DNA from: Mytilus californianus
Taxonomy: Eukaryota
NCBI RefSeq assembly: GCF_021869535.1
Contig: NW_026262723.1
Span: 73,222,001 to 73,286,000, forward strand
DNA: 64,000 nucleotides
Reading direction: 5' to 3'
In this document: positions 43,843 to 64,000 of the stretch, piece by piece
Numbering within the stretch: the stretch's first letter is position 1
How the letters are laid out: each line of letters starts with the position of its first letter
The notes under the pieces: model-generated
What the model saw: the letters and a program-made list of their open reading frames with translations, nothing else
What the model was told of the DNA's origin: nothing
The model's database searches: none
Position numbers and translations under genes: made by a program

Positions 43843-45137
43843 TTATGATACAACCGCAAAAAAATTTTGCGGTCATATATTGTTATGACGTTGTGGTTCG
43901 GCGTCGTCCGAAGACACATTGGTTTTCGCACTCTAACTTTAGGTTAAGTGAATGGATCTCTATGAAATTTTACCATAAGGTTCAATACCACAAAAGGAAG
44001 GTTGGGATTGATTTTTGGGGTTATGGTACCAACAGTTGAGGAATTAGGGGCCAAAAATAAGCATTTTTGTAACTTCCAGACATAACTTGTGTGTTAGTGT
44101 ATGGATCTCTCTGACATTGTACCACAAGGTTCCATATCACAAAGGGAATGCTGGGATTGATTTTGTGGGTAATTGCCTCGAAATTTTAGGAATAAGGGGC
44201 AAAAAAAGGGGCAAAAAACAAGCATTTTTCTAGTTTCATGACAATATCTTGTGTGTAAGTGTATGGATCTTTCTGAAATTGTACTACAAGGTTCCATATC
44301 ACAAAGGGAAAGCTGGAATTGAGTTTGGGGGTAATTGCCCGAAACGTTTAGGAATAAGGGGCCAAAAATAAGCATTTTTCTAGTTTCCAGAGAATAACTT
44401 GTGTTCAAGTGTATGGATCTCTCTGAAATTGTACTGCAAGGTACCATACCACAAATGGAAGGCTGGGATTGATTTTGGGGTAATTGCCTCAAAATTTTAG
44501 GAATTGGGGGCCAAAAAGGGGCAAAAAACAAGCATTTTTCTAGTTTCCGGACAATAACTTGTGTGTAAGTGTATGGATCTTTATGAAATTGTACTACAAG
44601 GTTCCATATCACAAAGGGAAAGCTGGGTTTGAGTTTGGGGGTAATTGCCCTAAACGTTTAGGAATTTGGTGCCAAAAAGGGGCCAAAAAACAAGCATTTT
44701 TCTAGTTTCCAGACAATAACTTGTGTTCAAGTGTATGGATCTCTCTGAAATTGTACTGCAAGGTACCATACCACAAAGGGAAGGCTGGATTGAGTTTGGG
44801 GGTGATGAATCATAAGGGGGTTCCAAATAATTTGGGGGGGGGGGGGATTTTTTTCCCCCATTTTTTTCTTTAAAATTTTCCATTTTAAATTAGTTATTTC
44901 TGATTTATATATAAAAGCAAATAATAATGATATGGTTTGAATAGGTAAATCAAAAAATTTTAAGTTCTTAGACCACATTCATTCTGTGTCAGAAACCTAT
45001 ATGCTGTGTCAAATATTTAATCACAATCCAAATTCAGTGCTGTGTCAAGCTTGAATGTTGTGTCCAAACTTGCCCCAACTGTTCAGGGTTCGACCTCTGC
45101 GGTCGTATCAAGCTGCTCCCAGCGGAGCATTTTATTA
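43843..45137 (+). mobile_element. Helentron-type non-autonomous element, copy C (inverted relative to copies A and B)
   Basis: Reverse complement of the 14705-15989 element, including its unique non-repetitive arm; internal ~160-bp array; 3' hairpin tgctcccagcggagca followed by TTTT. Confidence 0.8.
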
Positions 45138-47515: not shown

Positions 47516-47597
47516 ATGAAGTTGATCATGACGGAACATTACATTTTAAAATTGTGTTTTTTATGTCTCGGATTATTACAGTATGGATCATCTGAAA
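47516..47597 (+). CDS. Candidate first coding exon (signal peptide) of the Hedge/M15-fold gene
   Basis: MKLIMTEHYILKLCFLCLGLLQYGSSE (alternative ATG at 47528) has a hydrophobic core and small residues before a cleavage point, then a strong donor a|gtaagt in phase 1, matching the phase-1 acceptor at 56066. The link across 8.5 kb is inferred. Confidence 0.55.
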
Positions 47598-56065: not shown

Positions 56066-59000
56066 AGATAGCGTTTGATACCGGTATTAGTTTGGACGTT
56101 GTTGACCCAGACCTGTTGGGAACGGAAAAAGATAATGTTGCTGATCCAGTCAATACAGGTATGTGTTCATCAAAATCAACCAATTCATAAAGAAAGTCAA
56201 TTAAAGTCTCGCAATTTGAGAGAAAGTTTTTTTTACCATACGTTACAAATTCAAGAAACATACAGACCGAAAGCGAAAATATATTATAGTATGCATACAT
56301 TAATTATGGAAACTTTTATCAGATGAATGCGTTATGTTGAGAATCAAACAGATTTAACTACTGAATAAATCAATTTAAAAATTCGGACCTGCAGTTTACG
56401 GATTTTTTCGTGTATTTCTGATAGCGTGTGCATCGAGATTGGTTCACACTATTAGTACCATCCTTTGATATGTGCATAATTAGCCAATAAAAGTTCTCAT
56501 ATTTAATAAAATGTAAGGTACTTGCCTCCAAATATTTGATGTTGGTATAATTGTTAAAACTCCCTTGATCTTGCAGGGAGCTACTTGTTTAAAGCAAAAA
56601 ATGATGGTGACACCAGAGCTTTGACATTGAACATACTGGTACGAGATTTCAAGTCGGCAGATTCGCTGTACTTTAGGGCTCATCCAACTTTCCTAAAATG
56701 TATACAAGCCGCCATGACCAAACTCAGAAATGCTGATAAACAGGTAAAATATTATAAAAATAGATAGTAGCAAAGAAAAAAAACCAAACGTAACAAGAAT
56801 AATATTTTAGGATTTTCTCCTGGAGTTTTCATGAAATATGAATCAAGAACGTCCCTCTTAAATTGGCAGTTTTCATACACTATAACCAAAAGCAATAGCT
56901 TTACAAAATTGAATGCCGTATGCAAGGCACGCCCGCACAAAAAAAAAATTCTATTTTAAGGAATTTTAAACTTACAAACTGAAAAAATGTATCCAGTAGA
57001 TATCAGTTCTTTATACTAGACGATCAATGTAGTAGAAGATTCCAATTTCAGCAGCACATATTAATGCCAAAAGTTCTTTTTCACAAACATGTAATTGCGA
57101 GGGTACACACTTTTTATCAAGTCTCAGACACAAATGTATATCTTGTTTAAAATTGTTAATAAGTGATAAACACATCTCTCATACTATACTTCTCTGTTTC
57201 AAGGTCGCAGTTAAGCAAGGGTTTCAAACACACAATGACGTTGGAGGTGGTACCTCAGACAGAGAAAATTACCTTAGAAGCGGTGCTGGTATCACACTAC
57301 AGGCTAAGCAGGGAGTAACTGTCACTCTGGACGAAATCGTCACTGCTGTCTTGCAAACATGTCCTGTTCCTATGATGGTAAGTAGCAGTTCTTAAACCCC
57401 TTGAGCATACGCCCTCTTCCAATAATTTTATGTATTGTATAGACAGTTGTCATCTATAATTTGTTATATTCAAATTGAAGATGACAACATATTGCGGTTC
57501 TATTCACATGCATCTTGCAATCCAAATTACTAGTATATATTCATTCCTGTCTGGAAACAATGATTCCTGTTCCGGTGTCTTAGTTTACGCCATTTTGAAA
57601 ATATTGACCTCTTGTAACTGTCAGCGTATTGTCGTTTCGGTGTGCTCTATAGTGTATTCCTTACCAGTGCGTTTATTCCGTCGGAAATGAAACACTAGGG
57701 GAAACACGCCGGGGATCATTTTCATAATTATTTCTCCAAAAGGAAGTCAATTCCAGAAAAGATTCACTGTTGCATGACAACACTAGTATATAACATGTAT
57801 ATCTGTCTTCGAACCACGCCGTCTGTAGTAGCAATCATGTTTCGATAACATCTTTAACATTAGGTTTGTCATCAAAACGCAATCAGACCAATTGATGCCT
57901 TTTGATGAAACATCATTTCTGTCTTGAAAATGGTACCTGCTCCAATTATTTAAAATATTTAAACTTGTCGATAATATCTCTGGTATGTTATGTCCAATCA
58001 AGACAAAAGCAAAGTGATTAATTATCAATGAATCAAATCATATCGCTACGAAATGGCAACTTCTGTACTCCACAAAGTATCGAACCAAACTATTATATAG
58101 AAAATCTGAAAATATTTCATCTGCCGCTCATCTCAGCTGTTGCAAATTAGACATTTGGCTTTCAGTAAGAGAGCATATAGGAATCTCTTCCTCAAAAATG
58201 AAATCTCAGGAGAAGTTAAATCTCAATGTTATTACACCTTTACCGGTAAGGACCCATATATACTTAAGGAAACACCAATAGGATATAAAATAGAAAGAAG
58301 TCAGATATTCCATAAAAAAGCGAATTAAATACACACTCTAGCGTATGAGCAATGTTAAAACATCGAATCTGGCCACTTAAATCGCTAAGTAGACCATACA
58401 TTTGTAAGATGGACAGGGACATGAATGCCATCGACTTATTTTACAAGACGACAACATATATGCAAAAATCTTTCGAGATACCAATATCACGAACTAAAAC
58501 ACATGATAATGTTTTATCCACGCATCACTTAAGTCTCGATTCCTTAGTAGCAGATTCCCTAAGCATTGTAGCTTTTACTATTTTATAAAAATAAGGAGAT
58601 GTGGTATTATTACCAATAAGACCACGATCGACCAGACACAAAAAGATAATGCAAACAACCATAGGCTAGCATAGGGGACTAAAAGGCATGAACTTAAACC
58701 CATACCGTAAAGTAAATCAGTCTTGGATGGAAAGCGGTCTCATTGGCACTCATACCACATCTTCTTATATCTATTTACATTTACTCAAATTATTTATATA
58801 TAACAGAAATTAGAGAGAGACATTGGCATTGAGAAACTTGCGGATGGCGTCCATGTTCACATGAAAGGAGCTACCCATACTTCAGGACCAACGTTCACTG
58901 GCGTGTCAGGAGAGTATGATGATATAAATGCTGGCTTAGGTAATACTGTCTTATTACAATCAATTGAAACACTGATATATATATAAGATTGTTTTTTTTA

Positions 59001-62000
59001 TTTGTTTTGAATATGCACTTGGCCTTTAACAGTCCTATACAAGTAGGTGAATGGGGATATGAATGCCTAATCTCCATCTCAGATTTCTTTGGTCTTCAAA
59101 CTACTTAGTAGTCTGAGTATACTATTTTAGATATAAAACAATGACCATTTTATATCTATTCATCAAACTTGAATACCCTCTCTGTAAAAACAAGAATTGA
59201 ATGTTAACAATATCACTAGGCAATGAATATATAGATATGTCAAAAGTCCGTCGTTTGCAATGAGAAACAACCAAAATCTTATGAATGAAAAAAACAGAAG
59301 GTGCAAAAACTAATTAAGTACTGTATATTTTCTTAAAGTTTCATCGATCGTGTATTGGAGGAGGTGCGAACACAAACGGACATATACGGCGATCTTTTTA
59401 CTGTACATTATACAACTTGGCCATACTTTGGAAATACAAACTTGCTTCATTCATAGTTACATGGAAAGCAAAAATAATCTGAAAATTTATTCATAACCAT
59501 TGAATAAGATCTTTCTTCTGTGTTCATTTTAGATCCACAGAAAATACCAGATTGTTCCAATCTTAACACAGTTGCAGATGGTGCGTACTATCCTGGTGGA
59601 TACGATGATCCAACAAAAGTAGTAGGTGTAGTTGATGAACCAGTGGATAGAACTATGACAGTAGATGCCAGCAGGTATGTGGGCAGAATTGTTTAAATAA
59701 TTGATTTGTCAAACAGGTATCGATATGACGGTGGAAAGTAGCGGGTAAGATACCGGAGGAATAGAAATTCAAAGTAAAGAATAACAATTTCCCACAGTTA
59801 AATTGACCTAAGGTGGTTAAGAACATTCGTTGTTGGTCCTTTTGATTATGTAGCCCATGTATAAGTACATCTATGGCAGTCCGAGTTTTTTATCTTTTGG
59901 CATATCGAACTCAGAAAAAGATAGTTTACTTTAATTAACTTTGTGTCACACGTGAAACAGCTCCTTTTAACCCTTCCGGAGTAACTGAGATCACTTCCGG
60001 TTTTAATCTTTAGTTTTCTATATCGTGTTTTGTATTCTGTTGATTATCGTTTTGTCATTTTTCGATTTTTGCCATGGAGTTGCCAGTTTGTTTTCGATTT
60101 CCCTTTGGTTTCTACTGTCTCTCTTTTGTACCATCCTGTATTGATTTAACATCGTCAACGCTCATGACTACAGTTTCATATAGGCACAGAAAATTACAAT
60201 AAATATATTTGGAATACAACCAAAACAAAAATCCAAAAAGGCCCTTTAGAGATAAACCATTAACTTTGTCTTGGAGAGTATTTAGCATAAAAAATGGTTT
60301 CTTTATATAAGTTGACGTATCCTTTTTTCGGTAAACATGTTTATTACCATGTCAGCGCACCCGTTCTCGCTTCTTTTGGAGTTCATGCGATTTTCTCAGT
60401 ATTTGTTTCTTAAATTGGTTTATCTCTTTTCGATCTACTATCGCCTTAGTTTATCAACGAATGATTTGGTTATCAACACATACTTGGATGTGATTTGTCC
60501 GTTAGAAAACTCCCCTTTGGTTTACACTTTCGTAACCTATTTAAACACTGTGATTTATTTATGTGCAGTACACATGAATGAAATCCTGGGTTCTAAGAAA
60601 ATTGAAATTGAAGTAAAAAAAATAAAAAATGTTCGTGTTCAGAATTATAAGGATTTAAGGGCATACGACACAGTTTTGATCCCACGGTGATTTATTACGA
60701 AAATTTGCATACAAGCTATTTTTCACCCAGTCAATTCAAATATGTAATAAAAAATAAACCTTCATGTGCCACTTTAAGAGATAAATGGGGTCGAAATTTT
60801 AGACATTTACTCAAAATTTTTGTTTTTTGGACATTTCTATCCCTTGGATAGACATACCTAACTTTTTTGTTTCAAAAGATAAACAAAAATGGATTTTTGT
60901 AAAAACATTTGGAAAATCTTCTTTACATAAGTATGGTCTAAATTTGTATAACAATTCTTTGGAAATAATTAATTTTTATCAAAGTTTCATGATTTTAGAA
61001 AATAAACGGCATTTTTTGCTGTATATTTATCTAATTTAAAAAAATTTCATCTGTGACTTTTTCATAACATTTGGTACAAAAAATCAGAGGTTATTGATGG
61101 GTAAACTTGATCGCTGACTCAAAAACTTTACATTCAGTTTGTGACTTCATCGACCCAATGTACACATCAATTAATAACCTCTAAACAAAATGTGGCTATT
61201 AGGTTAAAACTACATGACTGTAAAATTCAGTAAAAATACTTTTTTCCATTCTCAATTTTATTTTTAAAATATACTGTTTAATTCAATTTTTTTAGACTTG
61301 TACAGTATTTGGGTAACAACGTCGACTTCAGTGATTGTGCAAATTATGCAGGAAATGCATTAACTGGACCTACGCTAAGGTAAGAACAATTTTGTACGGA
61401 TTAATACCAGAGCATATAAAGATATTACACACAAAAAAAAATCAAATGGTAAAAAGAAGTATTGCAAATTGTAGAATTTGTCCTGCAAAATAAATATTTG
61501 TGATCCTAATCCATAAAAATACTATTTTATGGCAAGTTATTTCAGCTTAATGACTTTATTTCATCTATGAACTTTTTGTAAAGAAAAATGTTGAAAAAAT
61601 CCAATTAGGTTTAATTTTGATTTTAGGTGTGCACAAAGAACGATGACAACAAGAATGTACAATGCCGTAAAATACTTACAAAAAATGGTTATAGATAATA
61701 TGTCAGGTAAGACAAGATATATAGCCAATGCTTTAATCGTTGATATGAGAAACACTATCAAATACCAAACAACAAGCCTGCTTTAATTGAATAAAAACAA
61801 AAAAGATATTTAATATGACTTTTTAATCATTGTTTGTATTGCATTTTTCAATAATTACATAAAAAACTAGAATCAAATTGCATATTCAAAAAGAAAAGGG
61901 CATCATTGTATGATAATTCTTCACTAAGCAAGCAATCTAATAAACACATATTGTTATTAGATGTTTAGTTATGGAGACAATACTACAAGTAACCGAAACT

Positions 62001-63392
62001 AATTTAATTCATCGACATTACTATGCGCTTTCACAAAAATCGGCCGAAATTGTGGACATCCAGATATTTTATAACAACACTTATAATAAGTAGTAACGGT
62101 TTTATCCAATAGGCAAGTTGGAGATCACAAAAGCATGGGACGATACAGGTGCAAATCCAGATTCTCTCCATTCGGAAGGTAGAGCTCTGACAGTACAGCT
62201 CAAGGCATCATCTTCGTCAGCAGATATGACAACGCTGTCACGATATGCTATATGTGCGGGTGTAGATTATGTTGCACACAAAGGTTTGTATGCTTTGATA
62301 TTGTAAACAATAATGGTATCCTTAAAGTAAGTATTGTAAACCAATGCTATCGATTTGGTTTATATTTTTCTTTATAAGAAATAATTCAAAGACGGTACTA
62401 AGAAAGCCTAAAAACAAATATAATAGTGACATTTCTTTTATAAAAGCTTAATCAATGATTTCCTAGTAATTTGTTGCATTCACCCATAATGTTTCTCTTT
62501 GAAATTTATATTGATGTGGACTGCATCATGGCTAGTACCAGTGTAGAGAAGAAAAGTTATAAGGTAAAATTAGGAAAATACAATTTAAAATGAAAATAAC
62601 ACTTAGTAAATTTCATGTGTCCTTAGCCCTTCTTTAGATTTACATTCACCAGGAACACGAAATACATACAGAATTTATGATAAGCAAAACAAAGGGCCAA
62701 GAAATCACTGTTTTTCAAAGAATTTTTTTTTTTCATAGGTGATCACCTCTTGCTAGCTGTAAAGAAAATGAAGGGTGATATAGCTAATATGATCCAGTTT
62801 AAATCCATTCAACTGATGGCAGTAGAACCACCATCTTCGAAAGCGTCATACTACAGTTTGCCATCTGAATTTACAGAAACTGAGATTAATGCCAAATATT
62901 CCCTGTTTGACAGCAGTGGTCGGGTTAGTATAAACATTAATATTAGTGTATCAGTAACAAGTAGATGGTAGAAATGCATTTTGTATTCGAATTAGTCATG
63001 CCTTTTATGTACTGTATTAGTGATGCCTTTCACCACATTTATTAGAAGTAATATTCAGGATTTGTATCAGCACTCATATTCAGCATCTATTTGGTTTACA
63101 TGATATAACGTTTAGGAGATGAGACAAAAAGACAATTTTTAATTAAAGGGAACAACTCAATAAAGTTTGGTGACCGTCTTTTAGAATTACATTCATTTAT
63201 CATAATTGATACAAAACACAATACATATTGAAATAATTCAATTATTGCAGGAAGATTTCAAGCTAAACGACAATGCTACAGTTGGAATGTTTATGTCACA
63301 AGATCCAGACTACCGTTACTTTAGATTAGACCCTAGAATAGTCGAATGTTATTCTTCAATAGTTGACAGTGAAAACAAAAACTCAGATGACT
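56066..63392 (+). CDS. Hedgehog/DD-peptidase-fold multidomain protein (M15A-like, Hedge, M15A-like), 3'-incomplete; exons 56066-56158, 56577-56743, 57204-57377, 58807-58939, 59533-59674, 61296-61379, 61627-61706, 62113-62283, 62739-62923, 63251-63392
   Basis: Ten GT-AG exons join without stops (phases 1,0,0,1,2,2,1,1,0,1). Exons at 59533-62765 align by eye with Hedgehog N-domains: LVQYLGNNVDFSD, AQRTMTTRM, KLEITKAWDDTG, SLHSEGRALTV, LSRYAICAGVDYV, DHLLLAVK versus Shh LTPNYNPDIIFKD, ADRLMTQRC, KLRVTEGWDEDG, SLHYEGRAVDI, LARLAVEAGFDWV, AHIHCSVK. Confidence 0.85.
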
Positions 63393-63519: not shown

Positions 63520-64000
63520 GTAAAGATGTCCTCAGACGAGAGGTGTCATCTTTAGACTCATTTAGATTTGCTGTTCTGTTTTTGACATCTAAAACTTTTG
63601 GTCTCGATCGAACCTGGTGAAGGTTATGACCGACACATTTTTGTGCTTACTGAATTTGGCAGTATACCTTCATATAACTACTACTTGGTCGATGTCTCTG
63701 CTAATGGTCCGTTAGTCCCCGAGGGAATCATTCACCCAGATTTCAGAGCCTTGGTAGGATTTAAAAGATGTATTTTAATTGAAAATGTTCATGTTATAAA
63801 TGATGACATTGCAGTAAAAGTATGGCTGCAACTCTCTCAAATTTGACTGTCATGTTGAAACTCGTTGATATGTTGCTGCTCTCATTTATTTTAAGTTTAC
63901 TTATTTTTGATTCCAAAACTGCTGGTCTATCGCATATCTTACGATGGTTATTCCAGAAACGCGTGTCATGTACATGCAAATCGATAGACTGCATACCTGT
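63520..64000. repeat. Dispersed repeat fragment in the intron after the last visible exon
   Basis: No phase-compatible coding continuation was found. The sequence (ggtcgatgtctctgctaatggtccgttagtccccgaggg...) looks like a recurrent bivalve repeat; this is from recall and was not searched. Confidence 0.4.

Follow-up and report, generated by a model that had tools for sequence, protein, structure and literature searches.

The 64,000-nucleotide stretch of Mytilus californianus contig NW_026262723.1 analyzed here (positions 73,222,001 to 73,286,000, called the window; positions below are counted from its first letter) carries coding exons 1 to 11 of LOC127709245, a gene whose product of 928 amino acids (aa), XP_052070622.1, is annotated as an 'uncharacterized protein.' In this polypeptide a domain of 154 aa, here called X1, lies directly upstream of a true HH_signal (Hedge) domain, and a second domain, X2, follows the Hedge domain. 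X1 and X2 are most probably a paralogous pair with homology to the M15A peptidoglycan peptidases of bacteria and phages; they flank a genuine but zinc-less Hedge domain in a secreted protein. An earlier reading of the DNA (the original prediction) had proposed an M15A-type domain preceding the Hedge domain at 56577-58939, and this proposal was borne out by profile-profile comparison with hhalign (93.9% probability) as well as by structure searches.

Gene Structure and Transcript Evidence

LOC127709245 is the source of the exons seen in the window: the spliced window translation (456 aa) is 100% identical to XP_052070622.1, and the 17 coding exons of the genomic locus, when translated, reproduce this protein exactly. 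X1 is encoded by three exons on the + strand (56577-56743, 57204-57377, and 58807-58939), with AG acceptors and GT donors throughout; 56577 and 58939 are exact exon borders, and the peptides quoted in the original prediction were found where it had placed them. Together with seven neighboring exons, one upstream (56066-56158) and six downstream, the three X1 exons form a single open frame of 456 codons.

The first X1 exon (coding exon 3, 56577..56743) encodes the N-terminal strands, a long helix and a conserved F-R plus cysteine; it is 84% identical to a homologous exon at another locus, and its junction with the next exon (56743|57204) is present in transcript contigs. Coding exon 4 (57204..57377) provides the core of X1, with the central strand V-A-V-K-Q-G-F, a degenerate 'SxHxxGxAxD' region and a helix bearing the second conserved cysteine, and coding exon 5 (58807..58939) contributes the final G-I-E-K...V-H-V-H-M strands, in which an HxH motif is retained, and the linker to the Hedge domain. 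Upstream of X1, coding exon 1 (47516..47597) supplies the start codon and the signal peptide (aa 1-28 of XP_052070622.1), with a hydrophobic N-terminus and a phase 1 GT donor, and coding exon 2 (56066..56158; aa 28-59) encodes the mature N-terminus and the lead-in to X1, with AG/GT borders and a continuous frame. The Hedge domain starts in coding exon 6 (59533..59674) and continues through coding exon 7 (61296..61379, a cysteine-bracketed loop), coding exon 8 (61627..61706, a helix) and coding exon 9 (62113..62283, the core, with K-L-E-I-T-K-A-W ... L-H-S-E-G-R-A), all four of which are supported by contigs; exon 9 alone matches the Pfam HH_signal model at 1.2e-8 and the Shh, Ihh, and Dhh entries of the PDB at about 4e-5. 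Coding exon 10 (62739..62923) holds the end of the Hedge domain and a linker, and coding exon 11 (63251..63392) the first third of X2, the rest of which lies in exon 12. The latter starts 385 bp past the window end (junction 63392|64385, beyond the window). All of these exons are on the + strand. Intron 11 contains an open stretch of 86 codons (63586-63843), which was considered as the next exon and rejected, as it is intronic in the exon chain identical to the RefSeq protein.

Public runs were mapped onto window positions 56500-62400 to obtain transcript evidence. Two studies of the same species label yielded transcript-like contigs of 1,870 nucleotides (depth 57) and 599 nucleotides, whose splices match the X1 exon junctions exactly, all of them GT..AG, and run directly on into the Hedge exons. 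These contigs, along with the RefSeq-identical exon chain, support the earlier claim that one animal polypeptide joins an M15A-like and a Hedge module. Raw stranded RNA reads of the same species label were also found in sense orientation on 56577-56743, 57204-57377, 59533-59674, and 61296-61379, and they carry the 59674|61296 junction as well. Since these reads are only 90-95% alike to the window exons and show many fixed differences, they suggest expression of a paralogue or of a diverged second allele. In related mussels homologous exons with identical borders are present, and M. edulis has two members of the X1-Hedge-X2 family.

Several repeats surround these exons; runs of N are absent from the window. 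The segment 58470-58863, in the intron between exons 4 and 5, shows a huge summed contig depth in every run (up to ~600,000 in a DNA-like run) and many loose contig ends at 58722-58779; this is a repeat of very high copy number, probably a small mobile element. Several dispersed repeats occupy 59849-61227 in the intron between exons 6 and 7, where depth reaches thousands and contigs have internal joints. Upstream of exon 1, a tandem repeat of five head-to-tail units of ~160 bp (44048-44870) repeats, in its + strand frames, a peptide-like string that includes N-L-C-V-S-V-W-I.

Protein Architecture and Family Distribution

In the mussel the protein consists of a signal peptide, X1 (aa 54-207), the Hedge domain, X2 (aa 427-583), a polybasic run of arginine and lysine, and a cysteine-rich C-terminal region. 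Relatives were gathered by searching 1.84 billion representatives with an exon 4 profile, and by a word search with a full-length relative. They comprise bivalves (Mytilus coruscus, M. edulis, M. californianus, Argopecten, Solemya, and two unionid mussels), gastropods (two Patella species and Batillaria), the annelid Owenia, and the amphioxus species Branchiostoma floridae and B. belcheri, and the X1-Hedge-X2 layout is common to the bivalve, gastropod, annelid, and amphioxus orthologues. Relatives are ~920-970 aa long and all possess a signal peptide; HH_signal, at about aa 220-410, is their sole Pfam domain, with a match of 1.8e-10 for the true Hedge domain of the protein that carries X1 and X2. 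No Hint/Hog domain was found by Pfam after the Hedge domain in the full-length members, and Lophohog, considered as a candidate identity, was rejected because it is a Hog-domain family.

The part that follows X2 (aa ~600-928) is also conserved: a furin-like polybasic run of six to seven arginines or lysines precedes a cysteine-rich region with the invariant motif C-F-G-x-C-G-T-C-L. It is encoded outside the window, in locus L036 (18784-19095 and downstream). This cysteine-rich module found no Pfam match and no usable match in the ESM Atlas, where a search with the whole protein likewise returned no usable match; it constitutes a second unannotated conserved module of XP_052070622.1. No paper describing the X1-Hedge-X2 family or citing its accessions was found; the gene is annotated but uncharacterized and, as far as found, its M15A-like domains and the X1-Hedge-X2 architecture are undescribed.

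Fold and Sequence Homology of X1 and X2

An AlphaFold2 model of X1 was obtained with a joint alignment of X1 and X2 as input, the modeled sequence being that of the M. coruscus orthologue (the first alignment row), identical to the window protein at 150/154 positions. The model has a predicted local distance difference test score (pLDDT) of 95.1 and a predicted template modeling score of 0.89. By this model, X1 has the predicted LAS (lysostaphin / DD-carboxypeptidase / Sonic hedgehog) fold. In two VIA-align comparisons, one of them exhaustive over 48,161 PDB representatives, 1lbu ranked first (Z 10.7-10.8, root-mean-square deviation 2.7, 117 aa, 17-18% identity); this entry is the Streptomyces albus zinc D-Ala-D-Ala carboxypeptidase, the type enzyme of M15A. 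The next ten matches were all M15 or Hedgehog chains; Hedgehog chains reached Z 7.6-8.4, phage M15C endolysins 6-7.5, and unrelated folds at most 5.6. Foldseek against the PDB also placed M15 peptidases and Hedgehog N-domains in its top rows. Of the ESM Atlas cluster types, the ten closest to X1 belong without exception to PF08291/PF05951 (phage and bacterial 'Peptidase M15A C-terminal,' YcbK/MepK), with template modeling (TM) scores by query of 0.68-0.72 across 125-134 of the 154 residues. The X2 model (pLDDT 90.4) resembles 1lbu even more closely, with Z 12.1 compared to 8.0 for Hedgehog.

The relationship is also detectable by sequence when profiles are compared with profiles. An independent M15A profile was built from Escherichia coli MepK (the K-12 record) and 19 phage relatives from IMG/VR, against which hhalign gave 93.9% probability for X1 (E 1.6e-7), 80.2% for X2 (E 1.4e-5) and 96.3% for the two pooled (E 1.7e-9), compared to 25.8% (E 7e-4) for the family Hedge domain; as a control, the reversed M15A profile gave only 0.1-1.6% (E 0.03-0.66) with any of these four. 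X1 and X2 are paralogous to each other (98.9%, E 2.8e-17 over 132 columns), a likeness visible by profiles only. The X1 of Owenia matches PHROG 894 ('endolysin') in register at E 1e-4 and is the only X1 or X2 sequence to do so, while all ten M15A references including MepK match this family at 4e-11 to 1e-25. Identity between X1 and M15A enzymes is ~12-18%. Every one of the 30 X1 and X2 domains has two cysteines (C47 and C114 of X1) that the M15A references lack; a disulfide acquired in the animal lineage may link them, as would suit an extracellular protein. The alignment proposed by eye in the original prediction captured the M15A pattern and was off by one residue in one detail: in the hhalign register the first M15A zinc histidine aligns with the leucine after the conserved tyrosine in ...NYLRSG..., not with the tyrosine itself.

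Direct searches were less productive. Pfam and PDB phmmer searches with single X1 exons and an ESM Atlas feature search with exon 4 gave no match, and blastp of X1 against the Hedge domain and against the tail of the gene model found nothing. Word searches returned three genomic fragments only for the open stretch of exon 4 and one fragment, with no M15A proteins, for the X1 plus X2 profile.

Because Hedge and M15A domains share the LAS fold, X1 could conceivably be a diverged tandem duplicate of the adjacent Hedge domain whose M15A look is a by-product of lost Hedge-specific loops. Hedgehog N-domains are indeed the second-best structural matches (Z 7.6-8.4), hhalign aligns X1 with the neighboring Hedge domain weakly yet in the structurally correct register (13.6%, E 2e-3), and an intron lies near the same structural point in all three LAS domains (see below). 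We nonetheless consider such a duplication distinctly improbable, as the E-value of X1 against the M15A profile lies four orders of magnitude below that against the adjacent Hedge domain, neither X1 nor X2 matches HH_signal at E 10, and 1lbu leads the best Hedgehog chain by 2.4 Z units for X1 and by 4.1 for X2. In addition, the ESM Atlas neighbors of X1 are exclusively of the PF08291/PF05951 type, and motifs specific to M15A occur, among them G-[FY]-R/Q and, in X2, G-I-G-x-Y...F-V-x-I. The profile-profile comparison that the original prediction had called for thus agrees with it (E 1.6e-7 for X1 against M15A, 2e-3 against the adjacent Hedge domain): the searches assigned X1 to no other fold, and M15A ranks above ordinary Hedge domains by both profile and structure.

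Origin and Age

The X1-Hedge-X2 fusion is ancient. Because the layout is present in both Lophotrochozoa and Cephalochordata, it predates the protostome-deuterostome split and dates at least to the common ancestor of the two groups. The original prediction had also suggested an intronized horizontal acquisition and, if this was meant as a recent event, the data contradict it. A bacterial or phage fragment taken up by mussels, with introns gained later, would explain why the closest structural and profile relatives of X1 are phage and bacterial proteins, and phage-type M15 domains in animals have a precedent in rusticalin (PMC6339383). Against this, bivalves, gastropods, Owenia, and two Branchiostoma species all share the three-domain layout, M15A enzymes have low identity to X1, and no prokaryotic relative was found: an X1 pattern and tblastn scan of 185,579 prokaryotic genomes returned none, and 50,697 phage records searched with X2 by tblastn gave only noise. 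X1 is, moreover, spliced and expressed, and its base composition is host-like. Given the wide distribution of the layout and the lack of a close prokaryotic relative in these scans, it is very unlikely that mussels alone acquired the domain by a recent horizontal transfer. The candidate origins are a transfer in the distant past and descent and duplication together with the Hedge domain.

In each of the three LAS domains an intron directly precedes the central strand, at positions that agree structurally to within ~3 codons. In X1 it is at 56743|57204 (...N-A-D-K-Q | V-A-V-K-Q-G-F, phase 0), in the Hedge domain at 61706|62113 (...N-M-S-(G)-K-L-E-I-T-K-A-W, phase 1) and in X2 at 63392|64385, beyond the window (...N-S-D-D-(L)-I-E-V-E-V-I-R-G-Y, phase 1). 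These near-coincident introns are either the trace of a duplicated intron-bearing unit or a coincidence; they are suggestive, yet the evidence is weak because phases and exact positions differ. The original prediction had also raised the possibility of a relic of how Hedge arose, which stands as a hypothesis. A speculative scenario of this kind, which we regard as unlikely, is that the bilaterian X1-Hedge-X2 protein still displays the context of Hedge's birth, and that Hedge was born as the middle copy (or shares the immediate ancestor of that copy) among tandem non-catalytic M15A-derived domains of an early animal secreted protein. If this were true, the shared intron before the central strand would be a trace of internal duplication, and Hedge would be the product of a duplication inside an animal gene and not of a separate bacterial transfer.

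Zinc Site and Proposed Function

The M15A zinc ligands were placed on the sequences of 15 species through the hhalign register. In X1 the first histidine is found in 1/15 species, the aspartate in 0/15 and the last histidine in 11/15 (as HxH), the mussel having leucine, threonine, and histidine at the three positions. X2 has the first histidine in 12/15, the aspartate in 2/15, and the last histidine in none of the 15, and the Hedge domain of the family retains the first histidine in 13/15 and neither of the other two ligands in any (0/15 each). The arginine of the S-G-Y-R motif, which binds the substrate, is replaced by glutamine in Mytilus X1 and is present in amphioxus, Batillaria, and one other sequence. 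As none of X1, Hedge, and X2 keeps the full His-Asp-His triad in any species (0/15), all three are, judging by their residues, pseudo-peptidases, and X1 is predicted not to be a working zinc peptidase.

That X1 is an active zinc D-Ala-D-Ala peptidase or L,D-endopeptidase digesting the peptidoglycan of filtered bacteria would agree with its fold and family, which are those of peptidoglycan peptidases, with the secretion of the protein and with the C-terminal HxH in 11/15 species. It is very improbable all the same, since the first zinc histidine is present in a single species and the aspartate in none, leucine and threonine taking their places in the mussel, and the substrate-binding arginine has become glutamine in Mytilus. 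Having lost the metal site and, in the majority of species, the arginine for the substrate carboxylate, X1 would hydrolyze nothing.

X1 would most likely act as a non-catalytic binding or scaffold module of an extracellular protein, and a peptide or glycan may now be the ligand held in the former peptidase cleft. Amidases that have lost their zinc are numerous among peptidoglycan-recognition proteins, which makes binding of a muropeptide a reasonable candidate role; peptidoglycan recognition, as suggested in the original prediction, is a hypothesis. Alternatively, the ligand could be one of the extracellular matrix or a receptor, as the zinc center of Shh has been suggested to mediate matrix association (PMC8052667).

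Several observations weigh against the identification of X1 and X2 as M15A-derived, non-catalytic domains or limit its reach. None of the 30 X1 and X2 sequences matches any Pfam M15 model or HH_signal, even at E<=10, and PDB sequence-profile searches with X1 found nothing. The M15A profile represents a single subgroup (MepK-like, 'NFVHID' phage proteins), the X1 structure was predicted for the M. coruscus orthologue and not for the window protein, the Foldseek E-values to the PDB are weak (best 1.5e-3), and the lead of 1lbu over Hedgehog domains for X1, 2.4 Z units, is real but not huge. In 11/15 X1 domains the HxH persists, a hint that some chemistry with a metal or ligand is left. That the likeness is due to chance and X1 is a lineage-specific domain of another fold, as the empty Pfam, PDB sequence, and ESM Atlas feature searches might allow, is scarcely credible given a high-confidence model whose top structural matches are all of the LAS fold across three libraries and an hhalign E-value of 1.6e-7 compared to 0.03 or more for the reversed control.

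Comparison with Known Systems

The closest known relatives of X1 and X2 are the M15A peptidases (PF08291/PF05951, MepK/YcbK; 1lbu), whose fold they share along the entire domain (Z ~10.8 for X1 and 12.1 for X2, TM ~0.7 in the Atlas) and to which, by profile-profile comparison (80.2-96.3%), they are homologous. The order of the M15A motifs is kept as well: a helix, the central strand G-[FY]-x, the H/D strand, a helix, the G-x-G-x-Y hairpin, and a final strand with the position of the last zinc histidine. Unlike these enzymes, X1 is an intron-containing internal domain of a secreted animal protein of 928 aa; X1 and X2 fall under every Pfam threshold, their zinc triad is incomplete in 15/15 species, they add two invariant cysteines and they are accompanied by no peptidoglycan-binding partner domain. 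By its sequence X1 is thus homologous to the M15A/MepK peptidases, and its membership of them as an enzyme fails.

The Hedge domain (HH_signal, PF01085) shares the LAS superfold with X1 and X2 and resides in the same polypeptide, and Drosophila Hh likewise has no complete zinc site. X1 and X2 differ from Hedge in being missed by HH_signal, with 14% probability to the neighboring Hedge domain, and no Hog domain for lipid attachment accompanies them. A connection between Hedge and M15A had already been made through the bacterial Hh-like M15A peptidases ('bacHh'; Roelink, 2018), which were used to derive Hedge from a bacterial DD-peptidase (PMC6027127; PMC8052667). These proteins come from bacteria, have their zinc and calcium sites intact and look like Hedge itself, whereas X1 and X2 are animal, zinc-less, and located beside a Hedge domain; the distinction is drawn from the description of bacHh only.

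Two other animal proteins invite comparison. Hedgling, known from sponges and cnidarians, combines a Hedge domain with VWA and cadherin repeats (Nv 200640; PMC2362128) and, as in the present family, its Hedge domain lies outside a hedgehog gene, has an incomplete zinc motif and belongs to a large extracellular protein. In Hedgling, however, the Hedge domain is N-terminal and followed by adhesion modules, M15A-like domains are absent, and the protein is reported from non-bilaterians, whereas X1-Hedge-X2 was found here only in bilaterians. Rusticalin and rusticalin-like proteins of ascidians, amphioxus, coral, and placozoans contain an MD-clan domain for which a phage origin has been proposed (PMC6339383). 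Like X1 and X2, this is an M15-type peptidoglycan-peptidase domain inside a secreted animal protein. Rusticalin's domain belongs to the phage A500 L-Ala-D-Glu peptidase (M15C) type, can be picked up with an ordinary sequence search (PMC6339383) and has no association with Hedge, in contrast to X1 and X2, which are of the M15A/MepK type and far more diverged.

The link between Hedgehog and DD-peptidases has so far rested on the comparison of animal Hedge domains with bacterial enzymes. Here both kinds of LAS domain adjoin in one conserved animal protein, two copies being closer to phage and bacterial M15A and one being a true Hedge, and the mollusc, annelid, and amphioxus sequences provide material to test whether Hedge diverged by internal duplication or by separate transfer. 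Domain libraries currently miss this family of M15A-like pseudo-enzymes in animals. The protein is also a candidate, in filter feeders, for non-catalytic binding of peptidoglycan fragments or of matrix. Even if X1 and X2 were merely structural spacers, their assignment would still annotate ~300 formerly blank residues of a conserved protein.

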